IMG/VR virus record: IMGVR_UViG_3300027621_000003
Coordinates: 186,001-250,000 of that record
DNA: 64,000 bases
Direction: 5' to 3' (one strand)
Of the stretch, positions 8,734 to 28,202 are shown piece by piece; the stretch's first letter is position 1; the number at the start of each line of letters is the position of its first letter. Under the pieces are notes generated by a model, which was not told the origin of the DNA, did no database searches, and saw only the letters and a program-made list of their open reading frames with translations. The translations under genes were made by a program, and so were the position numbers.

Positions 8734-8802
8734 ACAACAAAGATACGAAAAAACCCCCACGTTGCCATGAGGGTTCAATATTATATTCATCAAGACTTTT
8801 TC

Positions 8803-12722: not shown

Positions 12723-13270
12723 AAGCCTAACTCTGTCTCAATATCAGCCAACTTTGGAAGGACTCTGTCTTTGTCTGACATTATTAATTGGCTAACATCT
12801 ACACCCCAATCTATATTAATTTCAGGGTCATTATATATAATACCACCGTCTGCTGATGTCATATATAACTCATCACATTTATAATGGAATACAGCAACAT
12901 CTGAAAGTGTAACAAACCCATGAGCAAATCCTTTTGGAACCAACATCATTTTCATATTGTCTTCAGATAATTTAACACCAAACCATTGTTTGTAGGTGTC
13001 TGATGATTTTCTAAGGTCAACCACAACATCATATACTTCACCTACAATACATCTAACAAGTTTTGCTTGTGGTGCTATCTTTTGAAAGTGAAGTCCTCTT
13101 AAAACTCCTTTAACACTAATTGATTGGTTATCTTGTACAAAGTTTGTATAGATACCTTGTTCCCTGAAAAAACGTTGGTTATAAGTTTCAAAAAAATACC
13201 CTCTGTTATCTTCGTGAACTGTAGGACTAATAACATACAAATCTTTAATTGGTGTTTGTTCTATTTTCAT
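12719..13270 (-). CDS. rfbC: dTDP-4-dehydrorhamnose 3,5-epimerase
   Basis: DNRGYFFE, FVQDNQSIS, GVLRGLHFQ and PKGFAHGF motifs. Confidence 0.95.
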   Translation of the reverse strand: MKIEQTPIKDLYVISPTVHEDNRGYFFETYNQRFFREQGIYTNFVQDNQSISVKGVLRGLHFQKIAPQAKLVRCIVGEVYDVVVDLRKSSDTYKQWFGVKLSEDNMKMMLVPKGFAHGFVTLSDVAVFHYKCDELYMTSADGGIIYNDPEINIDWGVDVSQLIMSDKDRVLPKLADIETELGF

Positions 13271-15669
13271 ATTTTACTTAGTGTTTTTAATGTTTTTAAC
13301 AAAGAATCTGGTGTAACAGAAATACTATCAATACCTTCACTAACTAAAAATTCTGCAAAATCAGGAAAATCAGATGGTCCTTGTCCACAAATTCCTACCT
13401 TAGTGTTAGTTTTTTTTCCAACCTTAATAAGGTGTGATATTGCTCGTTTTACCGCAAGATTTCTCTCATCGTAAATTGAGGATACAAGTGCTGAATCTCG
13501 GTCCAATCCTAAAATCAATTGTGTTAAATCATTGGAACCAATTGAGAATCCATCAATATGTTCTGAAAATTCTTCAGCCATAAAAATATTTGATGGTAAT
13601 TCTGCCATCAAATAAACCTCAAGACCTTTTTCACCTCTTTTTAATCCATAAGATTCCATGACTTTATAAACTTTTAATAACTCGTCTATTGTTCTACAAA
13701 AAGGAATCATAACTACAACATTACTAAATCCCATTTTTTCTCTAACTCTTTTGATTGCTTTAATTTCCATACCAAAAGCATCTTTATATTTTTCAGAATA
13801 ATATCTTGAGGCACCCCTCCAACCAATCATTGGATTTTCTTCATCTGGTTCAAAATAAATCCCACCCAATAAATTTTTATATTCATTAGATTTAAAATCG
13901 GAAAGTCTAACAATAACTTTATTGGGATAAAATGCCGCAGCAATTCTTGCAATACCATAACTTAATTTTTTTACAAAGAATGTTTCTTCATCTTCATAAC
14001 CTTTGGTTATTGTATTTATTTGCTCACTTAATTTTTTATCACCAATCTGTTTGTGTTGTAATAATGCCATTGGGTGAACTTTAATGTAATTATTAATTAT
14101 AAATTCTTCTCGTGCTAAACCAACTCCGGCATTTGGTAAACTTGAAAATTTAAATGCTATTTCAGGAGATGCAACATTTAACATTATGGGTGTTGATATT
14201 TTTGGTAATTCTTCCAAATTCGTTTCAATTTTTTCATAATCAATAAAACCATCATAAACAAATCCAACATCTCCTTCTCCACAAGAGACCGTAACTTTTT
14301 GGTGATTTTTTAATATGTCGGTTGCGTTCATTGTTCCAACAATTGCTGGTAATCCCATTTCTCGTGCAACAATTGCTGCGTGACAGGTTCTACCACCTTT
14401 ATTTGTAATGATTGCGGATGCTTTTTTCATTATGGGTTCCCAATCAGGGTCAGTCATATCGGTAACTAAAACACTACCTTCAACAAAGTCAGAGACATCA
14501 AACGTACCGTCACGACCATCTAATGAATACATTATTGTAACTTCTCCATTTGCAATTTTATCTCCGACTGCTCCACCTTTAACAATTGGCGTTAAATTTT
14601 CGGTATTGATTTTATATTCAACAAGTGTATCAGTTTTTTTTCTTGAATGTATTGTTTCGGGTCTGGCTTGAACAATATATAATTCATTGGTTAAACCATC
14701 AATTGCCCATTCCACATCCATAGGACACCAATATCCTTTTAAATCGGAATAATATTTTTCAATTGATGTAACCCATTTTGAGATTTCTAATACTTGATTA
14801 TCATTGATACAAAAATTGTTTTTATGTTCCTCATCAATATTAATAATTTTGGTTAATTTACCTTGACCCTCACCATAAACCATTTTTTTATCTTTGTTAC
14901 CCAATTTTTTTTCAATAATACAAGAAAATCCTTCTTCCAATAATGGTTTGAATACAATAAATTCGTCAGGAGATACTGAACCTTGAACAACCATCTCACC
15001 CAACCCATAACTTCCATTTATAATTACAACATCTTTGAATCCACTTTCAGTATCTAATGAAAATGCAACACCAGAAGATGATAAATCAGAACGAACCATT
15101 TTTTGAACACAAACAGACAATCCAACATCAAAATGGTCATATCCAAAAGATGTTCTATAAGATATTGCTCTATCGGTAAACAGGGAAGCAAAACAATTTC
15201 TTACAGATTCTAAAATGGATTCTGTACCTCTAACGTTTAAAAAAGTTTCTTGTTGACCAGCAAAACTGGCATCAGGTAAATCTTCGGCGGTTGCAGATGA
15301 CCTTACAGCAACGTCAGTCATTGTTTGACCATATGTTTCCGATAACTCAAGATACTTTAATTGTATTTCATTTTTTAGTTTTTCAGGAAAAACTCCATTT
15401 CTGATTAATTCCCTAATTGCAAGACCAGTCTTACGAAGTGCGATTATGTCATTTGGGTTTAAATCTAAGATTAGTTTTCTGATAGATTTATCTAATTTAT
15501 TATGATTAATAAAATCATAATATCCTTTTACGGTTATAGCAAAACCATTTGGAACTTTAATTTTTAAAGTATTAAGATGTTGCAACATTTCACCCAAAGA
15601 TGCATTTTTTCCACCGACTACATGAATGTCTTTTAAAGACACATTGTTTAAATCAAGAATATATTTCAT
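13267..15669 (-). CDS. ppsA: Phosphoenolpyruvate synthase (pyruvate, water dikinase)
   Basis: VGGKNASLGEM, VAVRSSATAEDLPDASFAGQQ, GGRTCHAAIVARE and DGFSIGSNDLTQ motifs. Confidence 0.97.
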   Translation of the reverse strand: MKYILDLNNVSLKDIHVVGGKNASLGEMLQHLNTLKIKVPNGFAITVKGYYDFINHNKLDKSIRKLILDLNPNDIIALRKTGLAIRELIRNGVFPEKLKNEIQLKYLELSETYGQTMTDVAVRSSATAEDLPDASFAGQQETFLNVRGTESILESVRNCFASLFTDRAISYRTSFGYDHFDVGLSVCVQKMVRSDLSSSGVAFSLDTESGFKDVVIINGSYGLGEMVVQGSVSPDEFIVFKPLLEEGFSCIIEKKLGNKDKKMVYGEGQGKLTKIINIDEEHKNNFCINDNQVLEISKWVTSIEKYYSDLKGYWCPMDVEWAIDGLTNELYIVQARPETIHSRKKTDTLVEYKINTENLTPIVKGGAVGDKIANGEVTIMYSLDGRDGTFDVSDFVEGSVLVTDMTDPDWEPIMKKASAIITNKGGRTCHAAIVAREMGLPAIVGTMNATDILKNHQKVTVSCGEGDVGFVYDGFIDYEKIETNLEELPKISTPIMLNVASPEIAFKFSSLPNAGVGLAREEFIINNYIKVHPMALLQHKQIGDKKLSEQINTITKGYEDEETFFVKKLSYGIARIAAAFYPNKVIVRLSDFKSNEYKNLLGGIYFEPDEENPMIGWRGASRYYSEKYKDAFGMEIKAIKRVREKMGFSNVVVMIPFCRTIDELLKVYKVMESYGLKRGEKGLEVYLMAELPSNIFMAEEFSEHIDGFSIGSNDLTQLILGLDRDSALVSSIYDERNLAVKRAISHLIKVGKKTNTKVGICGQGPSDFPDFAEFLVSEGIDSISVTPDSLLKTLKTLSKI

Positions 15670-15883: not shown

Positions 15884-16245
15884 TATTCAAATATTTGTAT
15901 TTTAGCATCAACCTCTTTTAATTCTGTCCATGTTCCCAAATATGTAACCGCTCTAACTTTTCTATTATCAATCCACACATATTCCTGACCATCCTTAATT
16001 CGTGGTTTATCCATAACTAATCCATGATACTTAAAACCTTTTTCTTTTAACCACAATTCTGTCACCTCTTTGTCTTTACCTTCCCTTGCGGTGAAGAATG
16101 TAATTATATTACCTTCATCATACCATTTATTAATAATCAGTAACGCAGGCTCATAGTGATTTGCCGTTGAGTACAGATGACTTTCTTCATTTTTGATGTC
16201 ATCGCATATAGTACCATCAATATCAATTAGAAATACTTTGTTCAT
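15883..16245 (-). CDS. HAD-superfamily phosphatase
   Basis: DIDGT motif I, TAR motif II, KP...ID. Confidence 0.8.
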   Translation of the reverse strand: MNKVFLIDIDGTICDDIKNEESHLYSTANHYEPALLIINKWYDEGNIITFFTAREGKDKEVTELWLKEKGFKYHGLVMDKPRIKDGQEYVWIDNRKVRAVTYLGTWTELKEVDAKIQIFE

Positions 16246-16426
16246 TTAATTCAATCTCCTCTTCGTATTGTCGTTTTAATTCTATATATGCCAATTCGGC
16301 ACATTCAACTGTATTTAAATTAGGATGTTTTTTTCTACATTCATTAACTTTGTCATGCATCTCATTGTATTTACCAATCTCATTTGATAAATGATACAAT
16401 TCCTCAATCCATTCTTCGTTTGTCAT
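16223..16426 (-). CDS. Small hypothetical protein
   Basis: ORF track; first ATG MTNEEW. Confidence 0.55.
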   Translation of the reverse strand: MTNEEWIEELYHLSNEIGKYNEMHDKVNECRKKHPNLNTVECAELAYIELKRQYEEEIELNEQSISN

Positions 16427-16813
16427 ATTAACCAATTGTCTTTTTTATTGTTTCTTATAAACCGCATGATTATCGGTGCTGGTATTAAACATAATAAAAA
16501 AATAACAATATTGTCTAATATTTTTTTCATTTTATGATTTTTTTTTGAAATTAAAAATTGCATGTCCAACCAATGTTCCTGACATAAAACAACATAAGAT
16601 TGATAGTAAAAAATTAGACATGTTAAATGAAACCAACAAACATGCAATCGTAAATAATAAAAAAGTGAACCTATTCAAAAAATCTGTTAGGTTCATTTTT
16701 TTTTTACCATTTCTTTGATTTCCGACAATACTCCAAGTAAAATAAAACTCAAAAATAAAGTTAAAAATGGGTGTTCACTCATTACTTCAAACGCTTCTCT
16801 CATGCCAATAAAA

Positions 16814-16948
16814 TTAACCTTGTTGAGTTTGAGACTCTTTTAACTTAACTGCTTCAGCAATCATGTTTTCATTACTACCACCATACTTACATGAGCATGT
16901 TGGTTTACCGTGTTGTTTCAAAATTTCTTTTGCTTCTTCTAAGTTCAT
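16814..16948 (-). CDS. Small hypothetical protein, 44 aa (MNLEEAKEIL...CSC...), absent from the ORF track
   Basis: Hand-translated. Confidence 0.45.
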   Translation of the reverse strand: MNLEEAKEILKQHGKPTCSCKYGGSNENMIAEAVKLKESQTQQG

Positions 16949-16977
16949 AATAAAATAAGTATAATTGTTTTTTGTTT

Positions 16978-17628
16978 TTAAATCAATCTTTTTTCGTGAT
17001 GGTCTTTTGGAAGTGTTAGTTTAGCAATTGGTCTATTTCTTAACAATGAAATAACTTCTTCAACGTTCATTGGGTATAGATTATTTCCATCACAACCAAC
17101 ATCCATAGCACGACCTTCAGCTATTCTCAAATGAGGTGGTAAGTGAACGTGACCGTGTAAGTGCATTACATCAGCGTTCATACCATCCCAAGAACAAATT
17201 GGATAGTGCATACACACAAAAGTATATTTACGAGTTCCTGAACCATTTGGAATACGTAAGTCAAGGTGAATATAATCACTACAGGTTGTAAAAATGTCTT
17301 GAATATCACCTTTGTTTCTACGGATGTGATGGTCGTGATTTCCATGAATCAAGTGAAGATTTTTACAAACAATCCTACTCCTGAATTCTTGAATATTTTC
17401 AAACCCACCAAAACTGAAATCACCTAAGTGAATCAAAATATCATTCTCACCAACAGTTTCATTGATTCTATTAACCAACGTGTCATTCATGTGTTCAAGT
17501 GATTTAAAATCTCTTGTCGCTGAATCTGAATCGGCCCATTTTGTAGTTGCGCTACAAATATTAGAGTGACCGTAGTGGGTATCACTCGTAAAAAATAACC
17601 GTTGACCTTTTTCTAATACAACTTTCAT
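16978..17628 (-). CDS. Calcineurin-like metallophosphoesterase
   Basis: SDTH, LGD, GNHD, HYP and HGHVH motifs. Confidence 0.9.
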   Translation of the reverse strand: MKVVLEKGQRLFFTSDTHYGHSNICSATTKWADSDSATRDFKSLEHMNDTLVNRINETVGENDILIHLGDFSFGGFENIQEFRSRIVCKNLHLIHGNHDHHIRRNKGDIQDIFTTCSDYIHLDLRIPNGSGTRKYTFVCMHYPICSWDGMNADVMHLHGHVHLPPHLRIAEGRAMDVGCDGNNLYPMNVEEVISLLRNRPIAKLTLPKDHHEKRLI

Positions 17629-17773
17629 AACTTATTTACTTTGCATATAAAATGAAAAACATATAACCAAAATAAAGTAAAAACACCACAAATATAACGG
17701 TATTAATTTCTTTTGGAATTTCATATTACAAAGATAAACAAAAAACCCAAGATTCTCATCTCGGGTTTCAATT

Positions 17774-18499
17774 TTATTTCCTTTTGTAGTTATGTTTGTG
17801 ACACTCCATCCATTTCTTATATCTTGATTTACCAAGTATATCTAACACCTTATGTAGATACTCTTTTTCACAATCTTTTATTTTACCACACGCAGTCGCT
17901 CTATCCAAACTTGTTTTGATTTTCTCTTTTACCTGATTATTTAAATAGTGCATTTTACTTGCCCATGTTTTTTCTAAAGCGGTAAGTTTTTCTTTGTATT
18001 GAGATTCAGTTATTACACCCATTTTTAAATCATAATCTAATTTTGATTTTTCAGGCATGAACCAATTTAAGTAGTAGTTGTATTTCTGTGTTTTAGCCCA
18101 ACCTTCAATTTCTCTATTAATTCTTGCGACAATTATTTTGTTTTGTTTTTGACATTCAACTTTATTTAAATGAGCCTTATTTAAAAGTTCTTTTTCAGCC
18201 TTTGTAACTTCAATACCTTTTACACAAGAATCAATTTTACCTGTTCTTGATGTAACCATTGTAAATGGGTTGTAATCCAAAAATAATGGATAATCTATTA
18301 TTGTTGCATCAGTTATTGGTGTTATGTCAGATGTCATTGGGTTATCAAAGATAACGGTACCCATAGAATCTACTACAGCGTTTGGTTCTTCATCTACCAA
18401 AAGATTAACTGTTGGGTTTGGAGTTGGTATAGGTTCTTTTTCACAACCCATAAAACCAATCATACCAACTAAAACGAGCGATAATATTATTTTTTTCAT
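17774..18499 (-). CDS. Lipoprotein
   Basis: MKKIILSLVLVGMIGFMG-C signal peptide II followed by EKE. Confidence 0.7.
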   Translation of the reverse strand: MKKIILSLVLVGMIGFMGCEKEPIPTPNPTVNLLVDEEPNAVVDSMGTVIFDNPMTSDITPITDATIIDYPLFLDYNPFTMVTSRTGKIDSCVKGIEVTKAEKELLNKAHLNKVECQKQNKIIVARINREIEGWAKTQKYNYYLNWFMPEKSKLDYDLKMGVITESQYKEKLTALEKTWASKMHYLNNQVKEKIKTSLDRATACGKIKDCEKEYLHKVLDILGKSRYKKWMECHKHNYKRK

Positions 18500-18612
18500 G
18501 TTTTTATTTATAAATAGTTTTTATTTTTTTAAAATTTTTGGAATACGGAATGTTCTCTTACCCATTCTATACTTTTTTGGATTAATGTTAAAAATTGTTT
18601 TAATTTCATTTT

Positions 18613-20502
18613 TTATCTTATTAATGTAAAAGTTCCGTTGTATTGAGTGGATTTATTTTCTTTTGATATTATTTCTATTTTGTAGGTGTATACACTACTT
18701 GGTGACATTTTACCTAAGTAGGTACCGTCCCATCCTGTATTAATATCAACAGTTTCATACAACTTCTCTCCCCACCTGTTGTAAATTTCCATTCTAAAAG
18801 AATAACAATTTGAAATAAAGGGTTGAAAAGTGTTGTTGATAGCCGGGCCTTCTGGATTTGGGGTAAAAACATCGGGTATATACACCTGTAAATCACAAAG
18901 GGAATCTAAAATAGTAAATTTTCTAATAACTGAATCGCATCCGTTTATATTTTGAATAGTATCTTTAAACACCCCTGATATTTTAAATGTTAAATTTTCA
19001 TAAGAAAATTCCTCATCATCACATTTGCTAAATGTTTTATTAATATACTGTACTGTGGATTTGTAAAAATGAATAAATACATAAATGTTTGAGTCACATC
19101 CAGAGGTAGTTTGATTCCACTTGGTGAATTGTGTGTCATTACTGTACTTTTGTCCATCAAAAATAATCGGGTCATTACATGAATATAATTTAACTGTATC
19201 AAAATATGATAATCTATAGAGAGTGTCTATAAAGTAATTTACACACAAATTCTCTGTTTCTGTTTTATAAACAAAAGATTTTTTAGATGGGGGTTCGATG
19301 CTAATGCATTTAACATGTGGATTTAAATAGTAATTCACAGTATCTTTTGTTACTATTGTTAGATACAAAGGGTTTAAGGTGTTATCTAACTTATATGTAC
19401 CATCTTGACTATAGTATTTTTCATTTACATTTATAGAATCCCCTTTACATAAGGTCCTTATCTTAAAAGATATATCTTGAGTTTCTATACAGGTATTGTT
19501 ATTCAAATCAACCCAAAAATCGATGCCTGGATCTGGGTAGAAGTATTTTTGTTGAAATTTTTTATCTGAGGTTATGTAGTAATCGTGAACCTCCCCCGCC
19601 ATAATGTCGATAACATTCGAGTCGATAAACGTAAGATAACTTACAGCCCATGAATTTGGGTCTCTATAACAATATCCATTTTCACATAAATACAAAAAAT
19701 GTAAGCCGTCACATTGTCCTGAAATAGCAACTGCTGGGAAAGGTAAGTTAATCTTTCTCAGGACACGAATTGAATCAACTGAATAATTAAAAGTAAAAAC
19801 ATTTCCATCCTTATCTAGGGCTGATACAAATGCAGTTGTTGCTTTGATATCTACAATAGATTTTAATGCTAATCTGGATATTTTTGGATTTTTAATGAAT
19901 TCACCCCACCCTCCTACATTTATAAAATCAATGTACCCATTAGAATTTAAAGCAAAAAACTTCCCACCCGCTCCCATAGCAACACGTTTTACGTTATTAA
20001 CCCCGGTGATTTGTACAACCTCTTTTATGTAACTTGTGGAATTTGTCGGAGATGTCACCCATAGACTACCATCTTTTTTCACAAAAGCCACCCCGTTTAT
20101 TGCGGCATCACAAAATGATACATTACTTATCACTCCGATAGGGTATTGAATTTCACCCCACACATATCCACTGTCATTTGTTTTAATTATTCCCATAAAG
20201 TATCCACCAGAATGGTATTTTACTTCTGAAAGGTTATATGTCCATGTAGGTGATGTAATCACCGAACGCCAACCCCTTTTTATTAAACCTGTCATACTGT
20301 ATCCCCACCCGTAAAGTTTTCTTTCGGATCCACATATCATAAATCCACCGTAGGAGTACGAACTTAAATTTGTTGGTTTATACCACAAACGCCCTCCGAA
20401 ACCATCACCAACAATACTATTTTGAGACCAACAAACATTTGTAAAAAATATTAAAATATAAGGTATGATATATTTTGTCATAATTTGTTTATTGTTGCTC
20501 AT
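18613..20502 (-). CDS. T9SS type B CTD (gliding-motility-associated C-terminal/CHU_C) surface protein with an RCC1-like N-terminal region
   Basis: Signal peptide; C-terminal YIPDVFTPN...IYNRWGE...WDGTY...VYTY...GTFTLIR; GCDS repeats. Confidence 0.85.
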   Translation of the reverse strand: MSNNKQIMTKYIIPYILIFFTNVCWSQNSIVGDGFGGRLWYKPTNLSSYSYGGFMICGSERKLYGWGYSMTGLIKRGWRSVITSPTWTYNLSEVKYHSGGYFMGIIKTNDSGYVWGEIQYPIGVISNVSFCDAAINGVAFVKKDGSLWVTSPTNSTSYIKEVVQITGVNNVKRVAMGAGGKFFALNSNGYIDFINVGGWGEFIKNPKISRLALKSIVDIKATTAFVSALDKDGNVFTFNYSVDSIRVLRKINLPFPAVAISGQCDGLHFLYLCENGYCYRDPNSWAVSYLTFIDSNVIDIMAGEVHDYYITSDKKFQQKYFYPDPGIDFWVDLNNNTCIETQDISFKIRTLCKGDSINVNEKYYSQDGTYKLDNTLNPLYLTIVTKDTVNYYLNPHVKCISIEPPSKKSFVYKTETENLCVNYFIDTLYRLSYFDTVKLYSCNDPIIFDGQKYSNDTQFTKWNQTTSGCDSNIYVFIHFYKSTVQYINKTFSKCDDEEFSYENLTFKISGVFKDTIQNINGCDSVIRKFTILDSLCDLQVYIPDVFTPNPEGPAINNTFQPFISNCYSFRMEIYNRWGEKLYETVDINTGWDGTYLGKMSPSSVYTYKIEIISKENKSTQYNGTFTLIR

Positions 20503-20761
20503 AGTTTTTAATCTCTCGTTTTACTGCATCCCAATATCTATGCTCTGATTCCAAATTTTGAACTTCCATCCAATCAAAATCAATTGCTTCAATTATTTTA
20601 TTAATTGCAATCATTGCACATTGCTTGGCGTTCCATAATTTCATTCTTTGGGAATAAAATAAACCATCTTCCCTTATTGCTTCATTGGATGTAAATTCAA
20701 TAAATGATTCTATTAATTCCTCGGCTTGTTCTTTCGGTGTCTGTTGTTTATTGTTTGTCAT
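20489..20761 (-). CDS. Cassette-array protein (MTNNKQQTPKEQAEEL)
   Basis: ORF track; starts in a junction repeat. Confidence 0.7.
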   Translation of the reverse strand: MTNNKQQTPKEQAEELIESFIEFTSNEAIREDGLFYSQRMKLWNAKQCAMIAINKIIEAIDFDWMEVQNLESEHRYWDAVKREIKNYEQQ

Positions 20762-21143
20762 CTTCTTTATATTTAATTCCTTTTATTTGATATGATTTTA
20801 GACTTGGTACAAGTATTTCAAAAAATAGATTAGAGTCTATAAAATAACCGTAGCTGTAACCAATTCTTAAACCAACTAACCAAGCATCAAGTTCATAGTG
20901 AAATTGGTGCGGAAATGAGTAATTCTCTTTATCTTGAAGCAGGTGTCCTAATTCATGAAAAAAAATTGCTTTTTGTATTTCCTTATTGTCGCACTTACTT
21001 ATATAAATCTCCGCATTACACAGACTATTTCCACGAGATGAAAACCCAGTGTTATCTTCACCTTTGGCGTTCAAATACAAAGCAATGTTGTTTTGCTTGG
21101 CTATTTGTTCAATAGTGTAAGTTTGTTGTTTATTGTTTGTCAT
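20748..21143 (-). CDS. Cassette-array protein, ImmA/IrrE-like HExxH metallopeptidase
   Basis: IFFHELGHL...ELDAW. Confidence 0.6.
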   Translation of the reverse strand: MTNNKQQTYTIEQIAKQNNIALYLNAKGEDNTGFSSRGNSLCNAEIYISKCDNKEIQKAIFFHELGHLLQDKENYSFPHQFHYELDAWLVGLRIGYSYGYFIDSNLFFEILVPSLKSYQIKGIKYKEDDKQ

Positions 21144-21192
21144 TGCTTAGATTTTGTTTTTAATTGTCCGTACCATTCTGAAAATTTCTTGT

Positions 21193-21363
21193 TCATATTA
21201 TTTTTTTATTGTTTGTCATTGTTTTATCTTTTTCCATAAGTTCTTTAAGTTCTTTTTTTCTTTGTTCTCTTAGTTGTTCTCGGTTTTCAATACGCCATTT
21301 ATTTTTTGCTATTGAATCGGTTTTATACGCAGTAGACAATAAGTGTTTGATTTTGTCATTCAT
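21193..21363 (-). CDS. Cassette-array small protein (MNDKIKHLL)
   Basis: Start corrected; preceded by GGAGGTAACA. Confidence 0.55.
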   Translation of the reverse strand: MNDKIKHLLSTAYKTDSIAKNKWRIENREQLREQRKKELKELMEKDKTMTNNKKII

Positions 21364-21622
21364 TGTTACCTCCGAATGTTTCGTTGTAGTATTGTTGTGA
21401 AAAATCTTCTGCACTTTGTCGTTTTTCAAGATATTCTAAACCATAAGGCAAATTATTAAGATGAATAAACATATCCATTTGAGCATTTTTAATTTCATCC
21501 TTTCGCATTGCTTCGGCTTGTTCAAGTGCTTTGTCAATATCAAATCCTCTCAATCTCAAATTGATGTCTTTTTTGATTTGTTCAACCAACCACTCTACGC
21601 TACTCTGTTTATTGTTGCTCAT
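21356..21622 (-). CDS. Cassette-array protein (MSNNKQSSVEWL...YYNETFGG)
   Basis: Paralog of 22227-22484. Confidence 0.7.
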   Translation of the reverse strand: MSNNKQSSVEWLVEQIKKDINLRLRGFDIDKALEQAEAMRKDEIKNAQMDMFIHLNNLPYGLEYLEKRQSAEDFSQQYYNETFGGNNE

Positions 21623-21855
21623 TTGTTACCTCCTTTCTCCCTTGCAAAAATCTTAAATGTGTTTCCATTGCCATCACTAAATACAATGTTTGAAGTACTA
21701 GTATCACCAATTGTAAGGTTCATTTCTCTTTTTCCATTAATGTATTCAGCAATCATTACTGGTACATCATTATTAAATTGAAATGCCCATTCTAAGTTAT
21801 CAATTTTATGGTTTACAATTGTAACTGTTCCCAAGTTTTGTTTATTGTTGCTCAT
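21619..21855 (-). CDS. Cassette-array protein (MSNNKQNL)
   Basis: Start corrected to the junction ATG. Confidence 0.65.
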   Translation of the reverse strand: MSNNKQNLGTVTIVNHKIDNLEWAFQFNNDVPVMIAEYINGKREMNLTIGDTSTSNIVFSDGNGNTFKIFAREKGGNK

Positions 21856-22096
21856 TGTTACCTCCTTGTATTTTATCACGCATCCAAGTTGCACCACCTA
21901 AATAAGATACATCGTAAGGGTCAAATTCGTCAAACTCCATACCATCCAACTCCATCATTTTTTTAATCTCCTCATCACTTGGTAGTTCAATGGGTGTATA
22001 TTTCATTTCTTCTAATAATTCTTGAGGAGTTACAAAATACTCTCTGTTTAAATTACCGATTATTTGTAACACTTGTTCTTCCGTGTATAGTTTCAT
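21842..22096 (-). CDS. Cassette-array protein (MKLYTEEQV...IELPSDEEI...GATWMRDKIQGG)
   Basis: ORF track. Confidence 0.7.
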   Translation of the reverse strand: MKLYTEEQVLQIIGNLNREYFVTPQELLEEMKYTPIELPSDEEIKKMMELDGMEFDEFDPYDVSYLGGATWMRDKIQGGNNEQQ

Positions 22097-22230
22097 TGCT
22101 CACCTCCTCCGTCTGTTTTGCTTTTTGCATTTTTGCTCATTTTGTTGAATACTTCAACATACATTCTAATTGTTGGAGATACAATATAACTTGCTACTGC
22201 ACCTACCGTAAACCATATTAAATCATTCAT
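22093..22230 (-). CDS. Cassette-array small membrane protein, 45 aa (MNDLIWFTVGAVASY...GGGEQ), absent from the ORF track
   Basis: Hand-translated; ATGA overlaps at both ends. Confidence 0.6.
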   Translation of the reverse strand: MNDLIWFTVGAVASYIVSPTIRMYVEVFNKMSKNAKSKTDGGGEQ

Positions 22231-22484
22231 TGCTTGCCTCCTCCGTAGGTTTCGTTGTAGTATTGTTCAGCTGGTATTATTTCTCTATTAATTACCGAGT
22301 TTCTTCCCTCAATGTAATCATTTATTGTTCTTTCCTTGTCCATTTCTTTGGCTTGTTGATATGCTTTTGTTAGTTCTTCTGCATATTCAATTGGAGAAAG
22401 TTTGCCTAACCTTACTTCGATTTCTAGAATATCTCTTCTAACCGAAAACCATTCCACTGCTGTTTGTTGTTTATTCTTTGTCAT
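22227..22484 (-). CDS. Cassette-array protein (MTKNKQQTAVEWF...AEQYYNETYGG)
   Basis: ORF track. Confidence 0.7.
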   Translation of the reverse strand: MTKNKQQTAVEWFSVRRDILEIEVRLGKLSPIEYAEELTKAYQQAKEMDKERTINDYIEGRNSVINREIIPAEQYYNETYGGGKQ

Positions 22485-22572
22485 AACTTTTATTTTTTAA
22501 ATATTTTTCTATGTCGTTAATATACGAACAATCTTTCATAAAGCCAAATTTATTTTGAATAATTTTTTTTCT

Positions 22573-25500
22573 TTACCTTAGTAATGTAAAAGTTCCGTTG
22601 TATTGAAATACTTTATCTTCAAGTGACGTTACTATCATTTTATATACATATACACCATCTGGTGCAGGTTGTCCTTTATAATTACCATCCCATCCTTTTG
22701 TAAGGTCGGTTGTTTCATACATTTTTTCACCCCAACGATTAAAGATTAACATTTCATATGTTTTGTTATTAATAACATACGGTCTGAATGTATTGTTTTC
22801 ATTTGGTCCAGCACCATCAGGTGTAAATGCGTCAGGTACAAAGATAATGATATCAGGACCAATAACAACCTTTTTCATTGAAGAATCTTTACATCCTTTA
22901 TCTGTGGTAACAATTAACTTAATCCAATATGTCCCTGTATCCTTTCCAAATACAATGTTTGAGTTCTTAAGTGTATCACTACCAATCTTATATGATTTAC
23001 CCCAAGTCCAATTGTGTTTCATGTTGGTGACAAATGGATTCTGACTAACACTTGATGTGTTAATAGTTTTGAACTTAGGTAATGCCACCGTTGTTTTGTA
23101 CAATGGGTCGGTATTAAACACAACACTTGGTTTTGGATAAACATTAACGGTTTGTGTTATTGTTCTATTACATTGTTTTTTACCTTCTACGTTTGTAATT
23201 GATAAAGTTATTTGGTATTGTCCTTGTGTTGAGAACAAGTAAGGAACTGAACTGTTATTAGTGGAGATACTATTAGTATTTACATACCAATTATATGTTA
23301 ACAAAGAAGGGTTAATTCCTTTTCTTTCGGTGGGTGTAAAAGTGGTATTCAGTGGTTCACATCCATTTTGATATGTAAACATTGGGTCGGGATATTGGTG
23401 AATATAAACTCTTACGGTATCAAAAGGGTTTGGACATACATTTTTTGCAACACTCCAATCAACTCTAACATCAACATAACCTAACGCAGTATCAGTAATT
23501 GTTGGGACATACTTTTTATTCATGGTTGGTCCAAATGTTGCCATTGGTGTCCAATTAAATGTTCCACCATTTAAGTATTGGGTATCAATTTTTAATGTAA
23601 CTGTGTCAAACTCACATACTTCAATTGGTTTAACAAATTTAACTTTTGGTATATTAACAATTGTGATTTTAGCGTATTCAGTATCTTGACAGTTATATGG
23701 TGTAAGACCAATCATCATCCATTTGTATGGACCTGGTACATAACCTGTTAGAGTTGTTGTTCCGTTGAAGAATCTACCATCAGGATAACTCACAATGGTT
23801 CCACCTTTATTACTTACAGCTAATGTTAACACATCCAAAGGAATTGCGGATGCACATATTGTAGTATCTCTAACTCTCAAGTCCGATGTATCATGAACTA
23901 TGATATTAAAACTATCTATTTTTACACAACCAAATTGTGAACTTACATATTTTATGTTATACACACCAGGTCCTGTAGATGTTTTGAATAATCCTGTAGA
24001 AATGTTTGTAGTTACTTTTGGATGACTCCTATCACCATTTACATCTTGAACGTAAATTGTTCCTCCTGTTGGTTTAACACCATTAACGGTTATGTAGTCA
24101 AACATATTAACATTAATACCTGAGTTCACACAATAATCAGGAATTGTTTTAATAATAACTGTTGGTTCTGCAATTATATTTACGTCAACAGTATCGGTAC
24201 TTTGACATCCTGTAACTAAATCTCTAACAATAAGTTTGAATGTGTATTTTCCTTGATATTCATCTTGAAACGATAAACCAAAGTTAAATTTGATGTTTGG
24301 TGTTACACCACCTGAAATGTCATACAATAATTTTGATGTATCAATTCCTGATGGAGCTCTTACCACATCCCATCTCATATAAACACCTGATTTGGTTGCT
24401 GGTTTAGTTCTTAACACGTCCATCATCATTGACCCAATATCCTGACAAATAGTTTTTGGAACTAATGTAATCATTGGTGTACCATAAATTGTTTGTGTTG
24501 TTGAATCCATGTTGGAACAACTATTTGTGTCTGTGAACTTCACATACATTTTGGTGGTATAATTGTTTCCACCTTGTAATTTACTATTGTCAAGTAAAGT
24601 TGTGTTGAACAAAAATCTTCCATTATAAGGAATATATCCGTAAGTTATATTACCTGATTTTTTTAACTTATCTCCATTCCAAACATCATACGTTCCAAGA
24701 TTATGAGGTTTAACTAAGAATAGTTCCGACCATATACTACCATAAGAATAACATTGAGGTTTTAGTGGTTTTGGACTCCAACTAATTTTTGGTAATGGTT
24801 TAACCCTCACAAACATTGTATCCATATCTTCACAAGAACGTCCATTTTGAGTTAGAACAGTCTTTAATGTAAACATATAGGTTAATTTTGTTATATCAGA
24901 TTTTAGCTTATAGGTTGATAAATTACCCAATCCGCCCCAAGTATATGTAGGACTTAATAGTGGTGGTCTATGACTGGCAGTCAAGGTGAATGTGTCTTTA
25001 TCGCATATTGCTTGGTTTAGTCCTGCATTTGTTATTACAGTATCGTTTACAAAAACTGTTGCGGTATCATATTTTACACACTTCCACTTTGTTTCCATTA
25101 CCTGTACCCAATAGATGCCTTTTAAATTGGTTTTAAATATTCGTGTTGTATCACCAGTGCTCCACATATATTTAACCGTGTCTGAATTTTGAGCATCAAA
25201 TGTAGCAATTTCATAAGTACATATTTGTTGGTCAATTCCAATTCCCACCACTGGTAATGGTTTCTTATAAATTGTAGTTGTATCATAGAAAATACATCCA
25301 TCCCCATCAGTAATTTTTAGACGAACTGTAGAGTCACGATTAATATTAGGAATACTTAAAGTTTGAAAAGTATCTCCTAAAATATGCTCTTCAGATTTCC
25401 AAGCCGCTTTAGACCCTGTATCTTTCACTACTCTGGTCCAATAGTATTTGAATGGTGAATTACCAAACAATATGTTAGCATTTAACTTCATTGTAGTACC

Positions 25501-27114
25501 AAAACACGCAAAAGTGTCAGCATCAGCCATAACAACCTGAGGTGGATTTGGAATAATAACAGTATCCCTATATATGGTAGGACAGTTATCTGAGTTGTTT
25601 ACAGTATGTACAATAATGTATTTTCCACCACGGTAAAATGTCATAGTATCTGATTTTTTTGTACTATAAAATATCTCAGACTTGCCCAAGCTATCTCTTA
25701 CACTCCACTTAAATTGAGGAGCACCTTTAAAGGATAAACTAACAGATGCCGCCATGGCGAATTTACCACATTTTAAATTTGTGTATTTGCGAATACTAAA
25801 TGCTCGTGGATTTACTTTAACCTTAAAACCACGAATGGCTTGAGAAGGTTTTGGACAGTGTTCATCTGTTACTGTTACCGTGAAAGCATAAGAAATATCT
25901 GACGCCATACCCACAGAAGGTGTCCATTCAAAATAAGCCCATGCTTTTCTTTTTTCGGGCCAATCCTTCCTATTTGCCAAGGTAAACTTAGCGCCAGGAA
26001 TACCTTTATTCCATTTTAAATTTGTTGTATCTGGAATTGTTTGATTCGGAGTAAATGTTTCATCATCCGATTCTACCTTGAATTTTAGTGTTTCACCTTC
26101 ACAGACTTTCCAATTAAACGGACCTAACAATGTTGGTGCTTTGTTGTAACCACAATCATCTTTCACCCACAATTGCATATCTCTACGTGTTTTACCAACA
26201 ATGATATAACTGCCTGTGGCACTGTCTTTTCGCCATTCTGTAATTACAATCACCGCAATTGCAACTTCATCACATTTCGTGGGTGTTAAGATAATATCAC
26301 CAGAACTTGTATCAAAGAATAATCCTCTTGGAGGGTTCAGTCCGGGTTTAGGAGCACAGTTAATTGAAGTTGGTGGAATGCAATATGGCGTCATGAAATA
26401 ACGAGGAGTAAATGGCGAAGAATAAGATACAGAATTGTTGGGCAAAGTGTTAATACCATTTGTTAAACTGTATGAAAAAGAATCATAATCAACAGTATCA
26501 ATTGCACCATTATTAAAATAATATGCCTGATTACAACAAAGAAAGGCGATGGGAGCATTACTTAGTGTTGGAGAAGAGTTACACTTGTTTGTAGTCTTCT
26601 TTATATTACAGATGTTAATCATACAGGTAGTATAAAAACCTTGACTGGCGGGTCCAGTAGTAATGGCACCATTTCTACAACACTGTCCAATGTAAAATGT
26701 CACTTCACAACATGTAGATTTATTGAGATAACCACTTAATGGACTTGTATTAAAATCTACCGTAACTTCATAGGTATGTTCTTCAATTCCCTCACCAGTA
26801 CCATAAGTATTTTGAGGAGAACAAGGCGAACTCGCTGTTGAACATCGTGGCGTAACGTCTTTAATTCCCGTTCTGGTAATAGATAAAAGACTACTTCCGC
26901 ATCCATTTCCACCATTGGTTCCTGCAAATACACCAAATTCAGGAGAATTGAATGGGACACCTCTACAATCTCTATAAATTTTTGCTGTGATTTTATATTT
27001 TCCGTTACCCAAACATTTATAAGACATATCTCCACCCATCATGTGAGTGGATGTGGAAATGTTTGATAACAAAAACGTTAGAATAAAAAGTAATAATGGT
27101 AAAAGTTTTTTCAT
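22573..27114 (-). CDS. Large T9SS type B CTD surface protein with Ig/PKD-like repeats
   Basis: Signal peptide MKKLLPLLLF; THMMGGDMSYKCLG N-terminus; C-terminal FVPDAFTP...IFNRWGE...WDGNY...GVYVY...GTFTLLR. Confidence 0.9.
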   Translation of the reverse strand: MKKLLPLLLFILTFLLSNISTSTHMMGGDMSYKCLGNGKYKITAKIYRDCRGVPFNSPEFGVFAGTNGGNGCGSSLLSITRTGIKDVTPRCSTASSPCSPQNTYGTGEGIEEHTYEVTVDFNTSPLSGYLNKSTCCEVTFYIGQCCRNGAITTGPASQGFYTTCMINICNIKKTTNKCNSSPTLSNAPIAFLCCNQAYYFNNGAIDTVDYDSFSYSLTNGINTLPNNSVSYSSPFTPRYFMTPYCIPPTSINCAPKPGLNPPRGLFFDTSSGDIILTPTKCDEVAIAVIVITEWRKDSATGSYIIVGKTRRDMQLWVKDDCGYNKAPTLLGPFNWKVCEGETLKFKVESDDETFTPNQTIPDTTNLKWNKGIPGAKFTLANRKDWPEKRKAWAYFEWTPSVGMASDISYAFTVTVTDEHCPKPSQAIRGFKVKVNPRAFSIRKYTNLKCGKFAMAASVSLSFKGAPQFKWSVRDSLGKSEIFYSTKKSDTMTFYRGGKYIIVHTVNNSDNCPTIYRDTVIIPNPPQVVMADADTFACFGTTMKLNANILFGNSPFKYYWTRVVKDTGSKAAWKSEEHILGDTFQTLSIPNINRDSTVRLKITDGDGCIFYDTTTIYKKPLPVVGIGIDQQICTYEIATFDAQNSDTVKYMWSTGDTTRIFKTNLKGIYWVQVMETKWKCVKYDTATVFVNDTVITNAGLNQAICDKDTFTLTASHRPPLLSPTYTWGGLGNLSTYKLKSDITKLTYMFTLKTVLTQNGRSCEDMDTMFVRVKPLPKISWSPKPLKPQCYSYGSIWSELFLVKPHNLGTYDVWNGDKLKKSGNITYGYIPYNGRFLFNTTLLDNSKLQGGNNYTTKMYVKFTDTNSCSNMDSTTQTIYGTPMITLVPKTICQDIGSMMMDVLRTKPATKSGVYMRWDVVRAPSGIDTSKLLYDISGGVTPNIKFNFGLSFQDEYQGKYTFKLIVRDLVTGCQSTDTVDVNIIAEPTVIIKTIPDYCVNSGINVNMFDYITVNGVKPTGGTIYVQDVNGDRSHPKVTTNISTGLFKTSTGPGVYNIKYVSSQFGCVKIDSFNIIVHDTSDLRVRDTTICASAIPLDVLTLAVSNKGGTIVSYPDGRFFNGTTTLTGYVPGPYKWMMIGLTPYNCQDTEYAKITIVNIPKVKFVKPIEVCEFDTVTLKIDTQYLNGGTFNWTPMATFGPTMNKKYVPTITDTALGYVDVRVDWSVAKNVCPNPFDTVRVYIHQYPDPMFTYQNGCEPLNTTFTPTERKGINPSLLTYNWYVNTNSISTNNSSVPYLFSTQGQYQITLSITNVEGKKQCNRTITQTVNVYPKPSVVFNTDPLYKTTVALPKFKTINTSSVSQNPFVTNMKHNWTWGKSYKIGSDTLKNSNIVFGKDTGTYWIKLIVTTDKGCKDSSMKKVVIGPDIIIFVPDAFTPDGAGPNENNTFRPYVINNKTYEMLIFNRWGEKMYETTDLTKGWDGNYKGQPAPDGVYVYKMIVTSLEDKVFQYNGTFTLLR

Positions 27115-27172
27115 CTCTATAAGTATAGACAATATTAATGATAAAAAGTATTCTTGCTGTAAAAAAATAAAA

Positions 27173-27196
27173 AACCCCCAACTTTCGCTGAGGGTT
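27173..27196 (-). terminator. Repeated terminator hairpin, copy 1 of 3
   Basis: aacccccaactttcgctgagggtt, also at 30271-30295 and 32150-32174. Confidence 0.7.
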
Positions 27197-27221
27197 CTAT
27201 TATTACTGAGTAGTATTCTTC

Positions 27222-27506
27222 TTAGTAATTTGTTTCTCCTTCGTGTCTTGGGTCTAATTTTTCGTACATGTACGATTTGAACGCTGATGTTACACTTTGT
27301 TCTGCCTGAGCAATTTTAGAATTCATCCAATCTTCAAGTTCTTCATTTTCTTCCATCGCTTCCCACATTTTGTATGCGGTTACAGCAATTGTAAACAATT
27401 GTTGTTTTGCCATGTAGTTTCCATCAGAACCTTCAGTTGTTTCTGTTTTCATATCCTCAACTAATCTCTTAAGTTGGTCTTCAGTAATCATAAAATTTTT
27501 ACTCAT
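27222..27506 (-). CDS. Hypothetical protein, leader type A variant
   Basis: MSKNFMITEDQL; TATTTAT at 27513-27519; MAKQQL...LEDWMNSKI module. Confidence 0.7.
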   Translation of the reverse strand: MSKNFMITEDQLKRLVEDMKTETTEGSDGNYMAKQQLFTIAVTAYKMWEAMEENEELEDWMNSKIAQAEQSVTSAFKSYMYEKLDPRHEGETNY

Positions 27507-27530
27507 ATTAATATAAATACTTTAAAAGTA

Positions 27531-27558
27531 AAAAAGGTCAGACGAATCTGACCTTTTA
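27531..27558. terminator. Intrinsic terminator
   Basis: aaaggtcaga-cgaa-tctgaccttt hairpin. Confidence 0.65.
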
Positions 27559-27580
27559 TTGGGATTGACCGAATTCTCGG

Positions 27581-27892
27581 TCAATCAGCTCCACCACCCT
27601 CTTTTTTAGGAGAAGGGACTCCTGTAAAGATATTTAAAATATCTTCCACTTCTTCACCTGAACGGTAACTCATAACATCTGCACCACCACAGAACAGTTT
27701 TGTTACGAAATTACCACTACCGTTTTCTATTATAGCAATTTCAAATGTAGTTTCAAAATCACCATAAAGACCTTGTTTACCACCAACAATTGACACAACA
27801 TATTTACCAAAATCAAACAAACTTTGATAACCACCAAATTCTTTTAGTTTTTTCCTATCTTGTACGTCTTGTATGGTTAATTTAGTTTTCAC
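27581..27892 (-). CDS. Hypothetical phage protein
   Basis: SIVGG..GLYGD..TTFEIAI motif. Confidence 0.65.
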   Translation of the reverse strand: MKTKLTIQDVQDRKKLKEFGGYQSLFDFGKYVVSIVGGKQGLYGDFETTFEIAIIENGSGNFVTKLFCGGADVMSYRSGEEVEDILNIFTGVPSPKKEGGGAD

Positions 27893-28202
27893 GTAATTGT
27901 CTTAGTTTAATCCTTAGTAAATCTAAATTGTCTTTATCTCTTTGCGTCTTATTTCGTTTTGATACCAACTCATCAATTAAATCTTCAACCATCATAGTTT
28001 CACGTTCAAGGGTTAATTCTTTTTGAGTTTTTGCTGGTTCTATATTGGGTTGTTTTTCTTCAAGTTCCCTTTCTATTCTTTTTTTCTCATTCATATTGTG
28101 AATTGTTTTGACAACAATTGCACCTAAAACAACTCCACCAACAAATGGCCAAAATCCACCACGTTTCTGTTCTTTAACAACAACTATTCTTTCGTATCCC
28201 AT
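27882..28202 (-). CDS. Single-TM hypothetical protein
   Basis: TM segment FWPFVGGVVLGAIVV. Confidence 0.65.
   Translation of the reverse strand: MGYERIVVVKEQKRGGFWPFVGGVVLGAIVVKTIHNMNEKKRIERELEEKQPNIEPAKTQKELTLERETMMVEDLIDELVSKRNKTQRDKDNLDLLRIKLRQLREN

Follow-up and report, generated by a model that had tools for sequence, protein, structure and literature searches.

Is the short sequence that recurs along a row of small genes in a giant freshwater phage a junction at which genes are ended, started and exchanged, or is it only a conserved peptide tag? We examined this in a 64,000-nt stretch of DNA (positions 186,001 to 250,000 of IMG/VR record IMGVR_UViG_3300027621_000003, referred to as the window), which is part of a 295-kb viral contig. 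The first-pass annotation, made from the sequence alone, had described a 14-nt sequence that occurs seven times in 2 kb, starts six genes and at three junctions also supplies the stop of the upstream gene, with GGAGG-type junctions elsewhere and with differing cargo, the last being a 629-aa T9SS protein whose own signal peptide lies behind a fused MSNNKQI. From this it had inferred an integrase-free gene-shuffling and capture platform, in which microhomology recombination at a self-punctuating junction keeps any inserted gene terminated and translationally coupled. Our analysis confirmed what had been observed, whereas only part of the interpretation was supported by the evidence presented below.

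ATGASMAASAATAA has seven exact matches in the window, all on the minus strand within 20489-22484, against 0.02 expected from dinucleotide-preserving shuffles, none of 100 of which reached seven. When 3 mismatches were allowed on an 18-mer, only two extra chance-like hits appeared in the 64 kb and no further array was found. Six of the seven copies start ORFs and one starts an 8-codon stub. At 20489, 20748 and 21842 the same bases, read in another frame, give the upstream C-termini YEQQ, DDKQ and NEQQ, each followed by the stop. GGAGG lies 5-9 nt before the ATG of genes B, C, D, E and F and encodes the tails GGGKQ, GGGEQ, GGNNEQQ, GGNK and GGNNE, each followed by a stop. The features of the locus are listed in Table 1.

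Table 1. Features of the gene array and its flanks (window coordinates; family designations F0, F1 and F62 are ours)
Position	Strand	Feature	Remarks
22573-27132	-	1519-aa PKD/CHU_C protein	At the 5' edge of the array
22485-22572	-	Intergenic region upstream of the array	Holds a Bacteroidota-type -7 box match, TAAATTTG (22545-22552); possible array promoter, inferred from the consensus only (PMC6847099)
22471-22484	-	Motif copy 1 (ATGACAAAGAATAA)	Starts gene A, the first gene of the array
22227-22484	-	Gene A, 85 aa	Member of the abundant phage family F0 (MTNNKQQTAVEW...YYNETYGG); predicted helical hairpin with a disordered N-terminal 8 residues
22093-22230	-	Gene B, 45-aa hydrophobic peptide	No motif; ATG overlaps the TGA of A; GGAGGAGG lies upstream at 22237-22244
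21842-22096	-	Gene C, 84 aa	No motif at its start; ends GGNNEQQ using the TAA inside motif copy 2; relatives of C carry other tails (EDNDKQ, GGEQ, GGDK, each before a stop)
21842-21855	-	Motif copy 2 (ATGAGCAACAATAA)	Start of D and stop of C
21619-21855	-	Gene D, 78 aa	Family F62
21609-21622	-	Motif copy 3	Start of E; D stops at the TGA of its ATGA
21356-21622	-	Gene E, 88 aa	F0 paralogue of A
21193-21363	-	Gene F, 56 aa	ATG overlaps the end of E (ATGAATGA); reads in frame through motif copy 4 and ends MTNNKKII
21140-21219	-	76-nt mini-cassette plus the stop overlap	Motif copy 4 (21206-21219), an 8-codon stub (MTNNKKII and stop), then an 18-aa ORF, MNKKFSEWYGQLKTKSKQ and stop (21140-21196)
21130-21143	-	Motif copy 5	Start of G
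20748-21143	-	Gene G, 131 aa	Small HExxH protein, ImmA/IrrE-like by weak hits (Pfam M78, E 0.002; PHROG metalloprotease, 1e-7); ends DDKQ on the TAA of motif copy 6
20748-20761	-	Motif copy 6	Start of H and stop of G
20489-20761	-	Gene H, 90 aa	Family F1, PHROG 21441
20489-20502	-	Motif copy 7	Stop of H; supplies an in-frame 7-codon prefix (MSNNKQI) before the native ATG (20481) of the T9SS protein
18613-20502	-	629-aa RCC1-like propeller protein	Signal peptide and CHU_C (T9SS type B) tail; at the 3' edge of the array; probably a resident phage gene

Next, we asked how widely the motif occurs and whether it is conserved as DNA or as a peptide. It was found in 319 distinct contexts in uncultured viral contigs, whereas 596 Gb of bacterial genomes gave only 16 single hits. 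The logo of the 319 contexts has a sharp 5' edge at the ATG, and the conserved block covers nt 0-22; the 14-mer is the core of an 18-23-nt block, ATGA(CA/GC)AACAATAAACAA(CAAAC), that begins exactly at a start codon. A codon-degenerate pattern recovered 129 peptide-level instances, in which Thr was ACA in 99/100, Ser AGC in 28/29, Asn3 AAC in 122/125, Asn4 AAT in 125/129, Lys AAA in 129/129 and Gln CAA in 128/129. The background usage of the same codons is ACA 37-44%, AGC 8-15%, AAC 33-47%, AAT 53-67%, AAA 60-77% and CAA 72-91%; overall, codon choice is 97-100% fixed against a background of 15-60%. We concluded that the block is conserved as DNA and not as a peptide. A functional N-terminal tag (MTNNKQQ), for example for targeting, packaging or degradation, is therefore already disfavored and very unlikely, although the peptide is shared by unrelated proteins and is predicted to be disordered. 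In addition to the near absence of synonymous codons, the tag sits in front of the signal peptides of a lipoprotein family and of the T9SS protein, where it would be expected to be cleaved off with the signal peptide, and one copy starts only the 8-codon stub.

The motif heads about 28 unrelated small-gene families (28 families plus 14 singletons). It is the 5' end of the very abundant family of ~85-aa phage proteins F0, to which genes A and E belong and in which 243 of 460 members start with it, whereas only minorities of other families do. In family F1, only 18 of 105 members carry it, at five or more different join points, and the join points of 77 non-F0 genes spread over nt 14-33, a dozen or more of these genes keeping their own ATG right behind the motif. 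The motif is thus not a platform specific to this locus. One could argue that no special junction function exists and that in-frame deletions fused the start of an F0 gene to its downstream neighbor. This reading is consistent with the F0-specific codons 8-11 (TAVE) included in many grafts and with the other conserved F0 blocks, which are equally codon-frozen. However, a dozen or more grafts end exactly at the ATG of the cargo, which random deletions would rarely do, and codons 2-6 are 97-100% fixed while the adjacent conserved codons 8-10 vary synonymously (Val GTG/GTA/GTT 52/16/12). It also does not explain the use of the out-of-frame stops described below, motif starts break more often than neighboring small-gene starts (see below), and we regard it as unlikely.

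To determine whether the motif bounds exchanged genes, we compared cassettes between contigs (L numbers denote individual contigs). The 277-bp H cassette (20485-20761) is 99.3% identical in L003 and 97.8% identical in L004; homology ends exactly at the two motifs, and nothing else of L003 matches the window. The 76-nt mini-cassette is 99% identical in 5 contexts with different neighbors, including contigs L023, L130, L173 and L188. Gene order also differs among relatives. In Logan metagenome contigs we found in-register joints: 21613->21847 (10 bases shared) in one metatranscriptome contig, in which gene D is deleted from motif to motif; 21362->21623 (11 bases shared in GGAGGTAACAATGA, depth 168), a variant lacking gene E; and a head-to-tail joint, 21618->21216, going back 403 (depth 351). 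The E-F segment has 5-6x depth, but a tandem array, a circle or other phages cannot be told apart from contigs, and all these joints may come from other phages that carry the same cassettes. The duplication in the sister contig is not a simple motif crossover, as its junction carries about 150 nt of diverged sequence.

In alignments of related genome pairs, breaks fell at 45% of motif starts, compared to 26% for non-motif small genes inside arrays and 15% for genes elsewhere. Invariant gene order or breakpoints unrelated to the repeat would have spoken against shuffling, and neither was observed. The preference is nevertheless modest. Most clean indels in these phages lie away from the motif, and of 45 simple insertions between flanks at least 93% identical, none had both ends at a motif. 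Replacement ends fall at motifs in 9.5% of cases, only slightly above the 7.9% of gene starts that carry the motif, and the enrichment over neighboring gene starts is only about 2-3-fold. The loci were fished with the motif or with cassette proteins and alignment counts are not independent, therefore the statistics overstate significance.

The proposed self-punctuating character of the junction holds at scale: of 304 upstream ORFs, 134 (44%) stop at the TGA of ATGA and 84 (28%) at the TAA at nt 12-14, so that in 72% of contexts one of the two out-of-frame stops ends the upstream gene. The junction RNAs match no Rfam family and fold at 0 to -5 kcal/mol with the motif unpaired. These results are also compatible with a second, possible but less likely reading, in which the block is above all an RNA-level expression signal, either a downstream A/C-rich translation enhancer or reinitiation site suited to ribosomes that ignore Shine-Dalgarno sequences, or the operator of a phage translational regulator of the RegA kind, and recombination is an incidental by-product. 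The block starts exactly at the ATG, its overlap with upstream stops has the geometry of termination-reinitiation, and cargo genes often keep their own ATG directly behind it, as behind a leader; the relative L246 keeps CAACAATAAACAA as an untranslated leader 6 nt before its ATG. The other genes of the window lack SD sequences, and initiation in Bacteroidia depends on an unstructured A-rich start region (PMC6847099). A RegA-type regulon has a common sequence that overlaps the AUG of several early genes, and the motif here overlaps the AUG of several genes in the same way. On the other hand, the Bacteroidia determinants are adenines upstream of the ATG at -3, -6, -12 and -13 (PMC6847099), positions that are only weakly conserved here, and an enhancer needs composition and not a fixed order of bases. 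The motif is confined to 2 kb of the 64-kb window, no regulator and no candidate for a cognate RNA-binding repressor encoded by the phage has been identified in material that included no complete genomes, and this reading does not by itself explain 99%-identical cassettes bounded by the motif in unrelated contigs.

The capture of the T9SS gene by the array was not supported. The 629-aa protein has a signal peptide and a CHU_C domain (E 4.9e-11), and its homologues are annotated as gliding-motility C-terminal-domain or T9SS type B sorting proteins of Bacteroidota, all beginning with a hydrophobic leader before a conserved QNSIVGDGFGGRLWYKP segment. Its closest non-identical homologue (87% identity, 622 aa) starts at MKKYII, without the MSNNKQI prefix. 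This homologue is found in a related large phage, likewise a few genes upstream of the same metallophosphatase-like gene, at a locus with no array and no motif ATG. The window holds two more T9SS-tailed genes that have no motif. The gene therefore looks resident in the phage lineage.

With moderate confidence, we favor the interpretation that the block is a coding-embedded homology linker for cassette shuffling that also serves as a translation junction. In this view, the nucleotide-frozen 5' end of F0 has been grafted in frame, at many different join points, onto at least 27 other small-gene families, and here sits in front of the native start of the T9SS protein. Together with a codon-frozen GGAGG-containing 3' tail it would form a junction that ends the upstream ORF in either non-zero frame and starts the next ORF in an unstructured, A/C-rich stretch. 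Since the same ~20-35 nt sit at many gene boundaries in many phages of the same hosts, they would act as patches of homology at which phage recombination swaps, deletes and duplicates single-gene cassettes. ERF annealing protein and YqaJ exonuclease are encoded near the arrays in the small phages, and Rad52-like annealing proteins promote relaxed recombination and phage mosaicism (PMC3945230). Our data demonstrate the DNA-level conservation, the near-identical cassettes bounded by the motif, the in-register joints, the breakpoint enrichment and the use of the stops, whereas the recombination enzymes, the coupling of translation, and recombination (with or without selection for translation) as the force that keeps the sequence frozen are inferred. 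The terms integrase-free and microhomology recombination are likewise inferences, as no recombinase was found in the window, and 14-23 nt is short for efficient homologous recombination. The freeze is not unique to the junction, since internal conserved blocks of F0 are codon-frozen too, so another cause, such as recent spread or an RNA-level function, could act.

We then compared the junction with related systems. The PeSLs (promoter-early stem-loops) of T4-type phages (PMC2839356, PMC4122927) are also short repeats at the boundaries of small accessory genes in hyperplastic regions, where recombination between copies gives indels, replacements and duplications between close relatives and head-to-tail joints are compatible with mini-circles. 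PeSLs, however, are intergenic composites of a sigma-70 promoter and a terminator hairpin. The junctions studied here leave no intergenic space and overlap coding sequence, starting at the ATG and carrying stops for the two other frames. Promoter-like sites numbered 27 against 23.4 in shuffles (Bacteroidota-type promoters were outside the scope of this prediction), and 0 terminator-like sites were found. The element is shared by phages as different as a 295-kb contig and small ERF/YqaJ/DnaB phages. In the modular theory of lambdoid phage evolution (Susskind and Botstein), short conserved sequences between exchangeable modules serve as homology for recombination, and conserved gene-boundary sequences are reported for HK620-type phages. 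The motif shares with these linkers its conservation at boundaries in otherwise unrelated genomes with homology ending there, but the unit here is a single small gene, and the linker is one nearly invariant sequence found in hundreds of contexts that doubles as start and stop. Nucleotide-conserved blocks also flank hypervariable segments in the glycine-rich motifs of T4-superfamily gp38 adhesins (PMC3157838), resembling the three frozen blocks of F0; those blocks act within one gene, whereas the end blocks here bridge different genes. Ordinary translational coupling by overlapping stop/start (ATGA, TAATG) resembles the ATGA junctions, but the TAA-type junctions use a 14-nt overlap with a fixed TAA, and the whole overlap is one conserved sequence shared by unrelated gene pairs.

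Integron gene cassettes likewise form arrays of promoterless cassettes that all point one way, with unrelated cargo and variable order. However, the motif has no inverted repeat or hairpin of the attC type and its logo shows no symmetric element, the junction is translated, and the join points downstream of it vary over 20 nt. The flanking genes encode CHU_C proteins, a 241-aa protein with no family match and a metallophosphatase-like protein, and no integrase or attI was found next to the array among the neighbors scanned, within the 64 kb of the 295-kb contig that was analyzed. Recognition of the motif by a dedicated site-specific recombinase or nuclease, as in an attC-like or homing system, is therefore very unlikely, even though the joints are in register and HNH and GIY-YIG endonuclease genes are common in the same contigs; arrays also occur in very different phage backbones. 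At the edges of the array, the 3' 175 bp of the 1519-aa PKD/CHU_C gene is 70% identical to the 3' end of the 629-aa gene, so the two form direct repeats flanking the block.

We first examined the gene content of the array. All of its genes lie on the minus strand, in the order A (85 aa), B (45 aa, hydrophobic), C (84 aa), D (78 aa), E (88 aa, a paralogue of A), F (56 aa), a 76-nt mini-unit with an 18-aa ORF, G (131 aa, HExxH), H (90 aa) and a 629-aa protein with a CHU_C type IX secretion (T9SS) tail. The pattern ATGASMAASAATAA matched seven times, against 0.02 expected, and a relaxed 18-mer search added no further array in the 64 kb. The observation made in the first-pass annotation was correct in all its details: the three shared TAA stops, the GGAGG junctions (GGAGG-N5-9-ATG), the nature of the cargo and the residues MSNNKQI ahead of a signal peptide were all found again. 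Replication iterons or a promoter were considered and rejected, since every copy is in frame at a gene start, the spacing is irregular (76-629 nt) and there is no promoter excess.

The window was identical to IMG/VR contig 3300027621_000003 (294,914 bp) over the 12 kb compared (16000-28000). Megablast of the locus and tblastn of genes A and H against 50,697 GenBank phages gave no match to a cultured phage. The genes of the window almost never have a Shine-Dalgarno (SD) sequence (only 3 of 66, two of these three in the array), whereas many have a Bacteroidota-type -7 box TAnnTTTG (for example TATCTTTG) 5-8 nt before the ATG, which suggests near-leaderless transcripts and a repeated phage promoter. 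Three encoded proteins carry type IX secretion sorting domains, two CHU_C and one Por_Secre_tail. Together these features point to a Bacteroidota host, an assignment that is inferred. There are no tRNAs in the window.

Coordinates of the array, its junctions, the joints in metagenome contigs and other features (window coordinates unless a contig is named)
Feature	Coordinates	Strand
Array, gene A to the 629-aa gene	22484 to 18613	minus
Seven motif matches	within 20489-22484	minus
76-nt mini-unit	21144-21219	minus
629-aa T9SS gene	18613-20502	minus
Further genes with T9SS sorting domains	22573-27132; 30318-32069	
GGAGG sites at array junctions	22237-22244; 22103-22110; 21861-21865; 21629-21633; 21369-21373	
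Gene starts with a TAnnTTTG box	36497; 34663; 28476; 37308; 53854; 56409; 35251	
Joint that loses D	21613->21847	
Head-to-tail joint	21618->21216	
Joint that loses E	21362->21623	
Segment of raised depth (genes E-F)	21173-21673	
Joint from the 3' end of the 629-aa gene to the region upstream of the array	22570->18612	
175-bp direct repeats	18601-18774; 22560-22734	
Second copy of D-E-F-G in the sister contig	L001 (IMGVR_UViG_3300027772_000006) 8527-9143	
Leader of the related T9SS gene	L246 9960-10003	
Regions matched by the distant relatives L166 and L183	40073-41466; 42762-43502	
Pyruvate phosphate dikinase / PEP synthase-like gene	13267-15669	

Next, we examined how widely the motif occurs and whether it is conserved as DNA or as peptide. 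A 20-mer version hit more than 120 viral stretches, a lower bound, but only 16 single sites in 596 Gb of bacterial genomes. In 319 distinct contexts the conserved block runs from the A of the ATG to about nt 22, with a sharp 5' edge and a gradual 3' decay. A search pattern that allows every synonymous codon found 129 instances of M[TS][NK]NKQ, which use ACA in 99/100, AGC in 28/29, AAC in 122/125 at Asn3, AAT in 125/129 at Asn4, AAA in 129/129 and CAA in 128/129, whereas the next conserved codons do vary synonymously (for example, Val GTG/GTA/GTT 52/16/12). Background usage is 37-44% for ACA, 8-15% for AGC, 33-47% for AAC and 60-77% for AAA. A peptide tag was therefore rejected on codon usage and is considered unlikely. 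In the AlphaFold2 model of gene A, these eight residues form a disordered tail outside the predicted helical hairpin. A full-text literature search for the motif or the peptide found no paper that mentions either.

To determine which genes carry the motif, we clustered 5,129 ORFs from the fetched loci, and found that 28 families and 14 singletons have members that start with it. The main carrier is a large family termed F0 here, with the consensus MTNNKQQTAVEW...QAKEMEKE...EQYYNETYGG, in which 243 of 460 members start with the motif. In family F1 (gene H) the native start is MTPKEKAKEL, and only 18 of 105 members carry the motif, grafted at five or more different points. A lipoprotein family (F26) shows the same pattern, often with its own ATG directly behind the graft. 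Over 77 non-F0 genes the join point ranges from nt 14 to nt 33, with a mode at nt 18, and a dozen or more keep their own ATG immediately after the block. Plain paralogue ancestry, with deletion fusions to neighboring genes, is a rival reading that we consider unlikely. Pfam and PHROGs gave almost nothing for the function of the cargo, and ESM Atlas and Foldseek searches with the AlphaFold2 model of A returned only uncharacterised viral proteins.

The 3' side behaves alike. Sixty-five families or singletons end in a GG tail, which is written GGAGG(T/A) in 214 of 242 cases in the related loci, with the first Gly as GGA in 94% against 31-40% background. The same cargo (family C) carries four different tails depending on how it meets the motif. 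The GGAGG fixed at the DNA level in these C-terminal tails of unrelated families is SD-like, yet the same contigs almost never have an SD before DnaB (2/81), ERF (0/28) or YqaJ (0/36), and Bacteroidia ribosomes ignore SD sequences unless they lack bS21 (PMC9976891, PMC13000453).

The junction punctuates upstream genes in any frame. Of 304 distinct contexts, the upstream ORF ends at the TGA of ATGA in 134, at the TAA at nt 12-14 in 84 and a few bases upstream of the ATG in 50; it runs in frame into the motif in 3, and there is no upstream ORF in 24. The junction RNAs are essentially unstructured, no Rfam match was found in 17500-23500, sigma-70 promoter-like sites are not in excess and no terminator hairpin was found. 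The main rival to our reading is that the block is first of all a translation or regulatory signal and that recombination there is incidental, which we regard as possible but less likely. The known Bacteroidia start-site determinants are upstream adenines and low structure (PMC6847099), of which the motif matches the second but not the first.

We then looked for evidence that genes move at the junction. The 277-bp H cassette is 99.3% identical in contig L003 and 97.8% identical in contig L004, and identity stops exactly at its own motif ATG and at the end of the next motif; L003 is a small phage contig with ERF, YqaJ and DnaB genes, and nothing else in it matches the 64-kb window. The 76-nt mini-unit is 99% identical in contigs L023, L130, L173 and L188, each time with different neighbors. 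In Logan contigs of two DNA and two RNA runs, one joint loses D and shares 10 bases, a head-to-tail joint goes back 403 bp at depth 351, one joint loses E, shares 11 bases of the GGAGG tail and has depth 168, and several joints link the last motif to upstream junctions. Over genes E-F the summed contig depth is 5-6x that of the flanks in DNA run X12 and in RNA run X16, which could be tandem amplification, a free circle, or the same cassettes in other abundant phages. One metatranscriptome contig joins the 3' end of the 629-aa gene to the region upstream of the array, going back 3959 bp. The block is flanked there by 175-bp direct repeats at 70% identity with an identical stretch of about 25 nt, which are the CHU_C ends of the two T9SS genes, and this joint could be a duplication, a circle, or gene conversion in a variant strain. 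Among related genome pairs, alignments end at 45% of motif starts, 26% of other small-gene starts inside arrays and 15% of starts elsewhere.

This evidence has limits, since the loci were fished with the motif or with cassette proteins and the alignment counts are not independent. Of 45 clean insertions between nearly identical flanks among IMG/VR contigs, none has both ends at a motif, and replacement ends fall at motifs in 9.5% of cases, while 7.9% of gene starts carry the motif. These phages are therefore mosaic everywhere, and the junction is a hotter spot, not the only one. The 233-kb sister contig (L001, 99.7% identity) has the block D-E-F-G twice, but this duplication is not a plain motif crossover: about 150 nt around its junction are diverged, as if imported from a relative with the order G-D. 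The first G copy ends in KKL before the stop instead of EDDKQ, the following D copy starts MTNDKQQTAIGIV, and the same junction letters occur at depth 131 in run X12. The internal conserved blocks of F0 (alignment columns for AKEMEKE and YYNETYGG) are codon-frozen as well (TAC 93-96% against 39-45% background, GCC 93% against about 20%, GGA 98%), while the segments between them are unalignable, a mosaic-gene pattern. This fits recombination at every conserved block, but it also leaves room for another cause.

The 629-aa T9SS gene belongs to a family typical of Bacteroidota cells. Its closest non-identical homologue, 87% identical and 622 aa long, lies in a related large phage contig (L246), likewise a few genes upstream of the same metallophosphatase-like gene. 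That homologue has no array and starts at its own ATG, preceded by CAACAATAAACAA as an untranslated leader; the sequence before the ATG reads AATCAACAATCAACAATAAACAAAGA, the 3' half of the motif without the motif's own ATG. The two further T9SS-tailed genes of the window lack the motif. The gene therefore looks resident in the lineage, with the array abutting it and the last junction fused in frame to its start. The interpretation in the first-pass annotation, a platform for gene shuffling and capture, was thus only partly supported: capture of the T9SS gene by the array is not supported.

Our best reading, held with moderate confidence, is a coding-embedded homology linker: the ends of F0 genes would have become a common junction at which phage recombination exchanges, deletes and duplicates single genes. 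ERF/YqaJ-type recombination in the small phages is the likely machinery, given the relaxed recombination by Rad52-like proteins (PMC3945230), although a search of the window with ERF, YqaJ, DnaB and VRR-NUC queries found no recombinase. In this view the same bases would keep the result expressible, because they provide a stop in either other frame, a start codon and an open A/C-rich start region. The analysis establishes a real and widespread sequence feature, whereas the mechanism, including the enzymes and any effect on translation, is inferred. A site-specific system is unlikely. The closest system is the PeSL of T4-type phages (PMC2839356, PMC4122927), which plays the same role in the same kind of region, but PeSLs are intergenic promoter-plus-hairpin units, and neither defining feature, a sigma-70-type promoter in the repeat or a hairpin, was found here. 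The integron features looked for, an attC hairpin and an integrase among the adjacent genes scanned, were not found either. Shuffling of modules at linkers is a known idea; what differs here is that the unit is a single small gene and that the proposed linker is one nearly invariant sequence that doubles as start and stop. A more far-reaching possibility, which we consider doubtful although the evidence does not rule it out, is that the GGAGG tail, the ATG block and its two out-of-frame stops form an evolved, portable, frame-independent gene adaptor. Adaptor-to-adaptor recombination would then produce tandem amplifications or free mini-circles of single cassettes that move between co-infecting phages, and the codon-frozen GGAGG, in genomes that otherwise lack SD sequences, would make array genes readable mainly by bS21-free, SD-competent Bacteroidia ribosomes, giving the array its own translation regime.

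The junction gives a concrete, sequence-defined example of how single genes flow between very different phages in nature, and bears on the old question of whether phage mosaicism arises at conserved linkers or by random joining plus selection; here the linker is known, abundant and easy to recode. The motif also marks accessory-gene arrays in uncultured Bacteroidota phages, which are the likely home of host-takeover or anti-defence genes, and it suggests a natural design for stacking genes in one operon regardless of reading frame. The frozen SD-like GGAGG poses a testable question about translation in Bacteroidia.

The position of the array in the genome differs among relatives of the window phage. 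Contigs L166 and L183, distant relatives at 68-70% DNA identity to two regions of the window, carry a motif array with other cargo only about 2 kb from those genes. The window also encodes an 800-aa pyruvate phosphate dikinase / PEP synthase-like protein with all three domains at strong E-values, a probable auxiliary metabolic gene.
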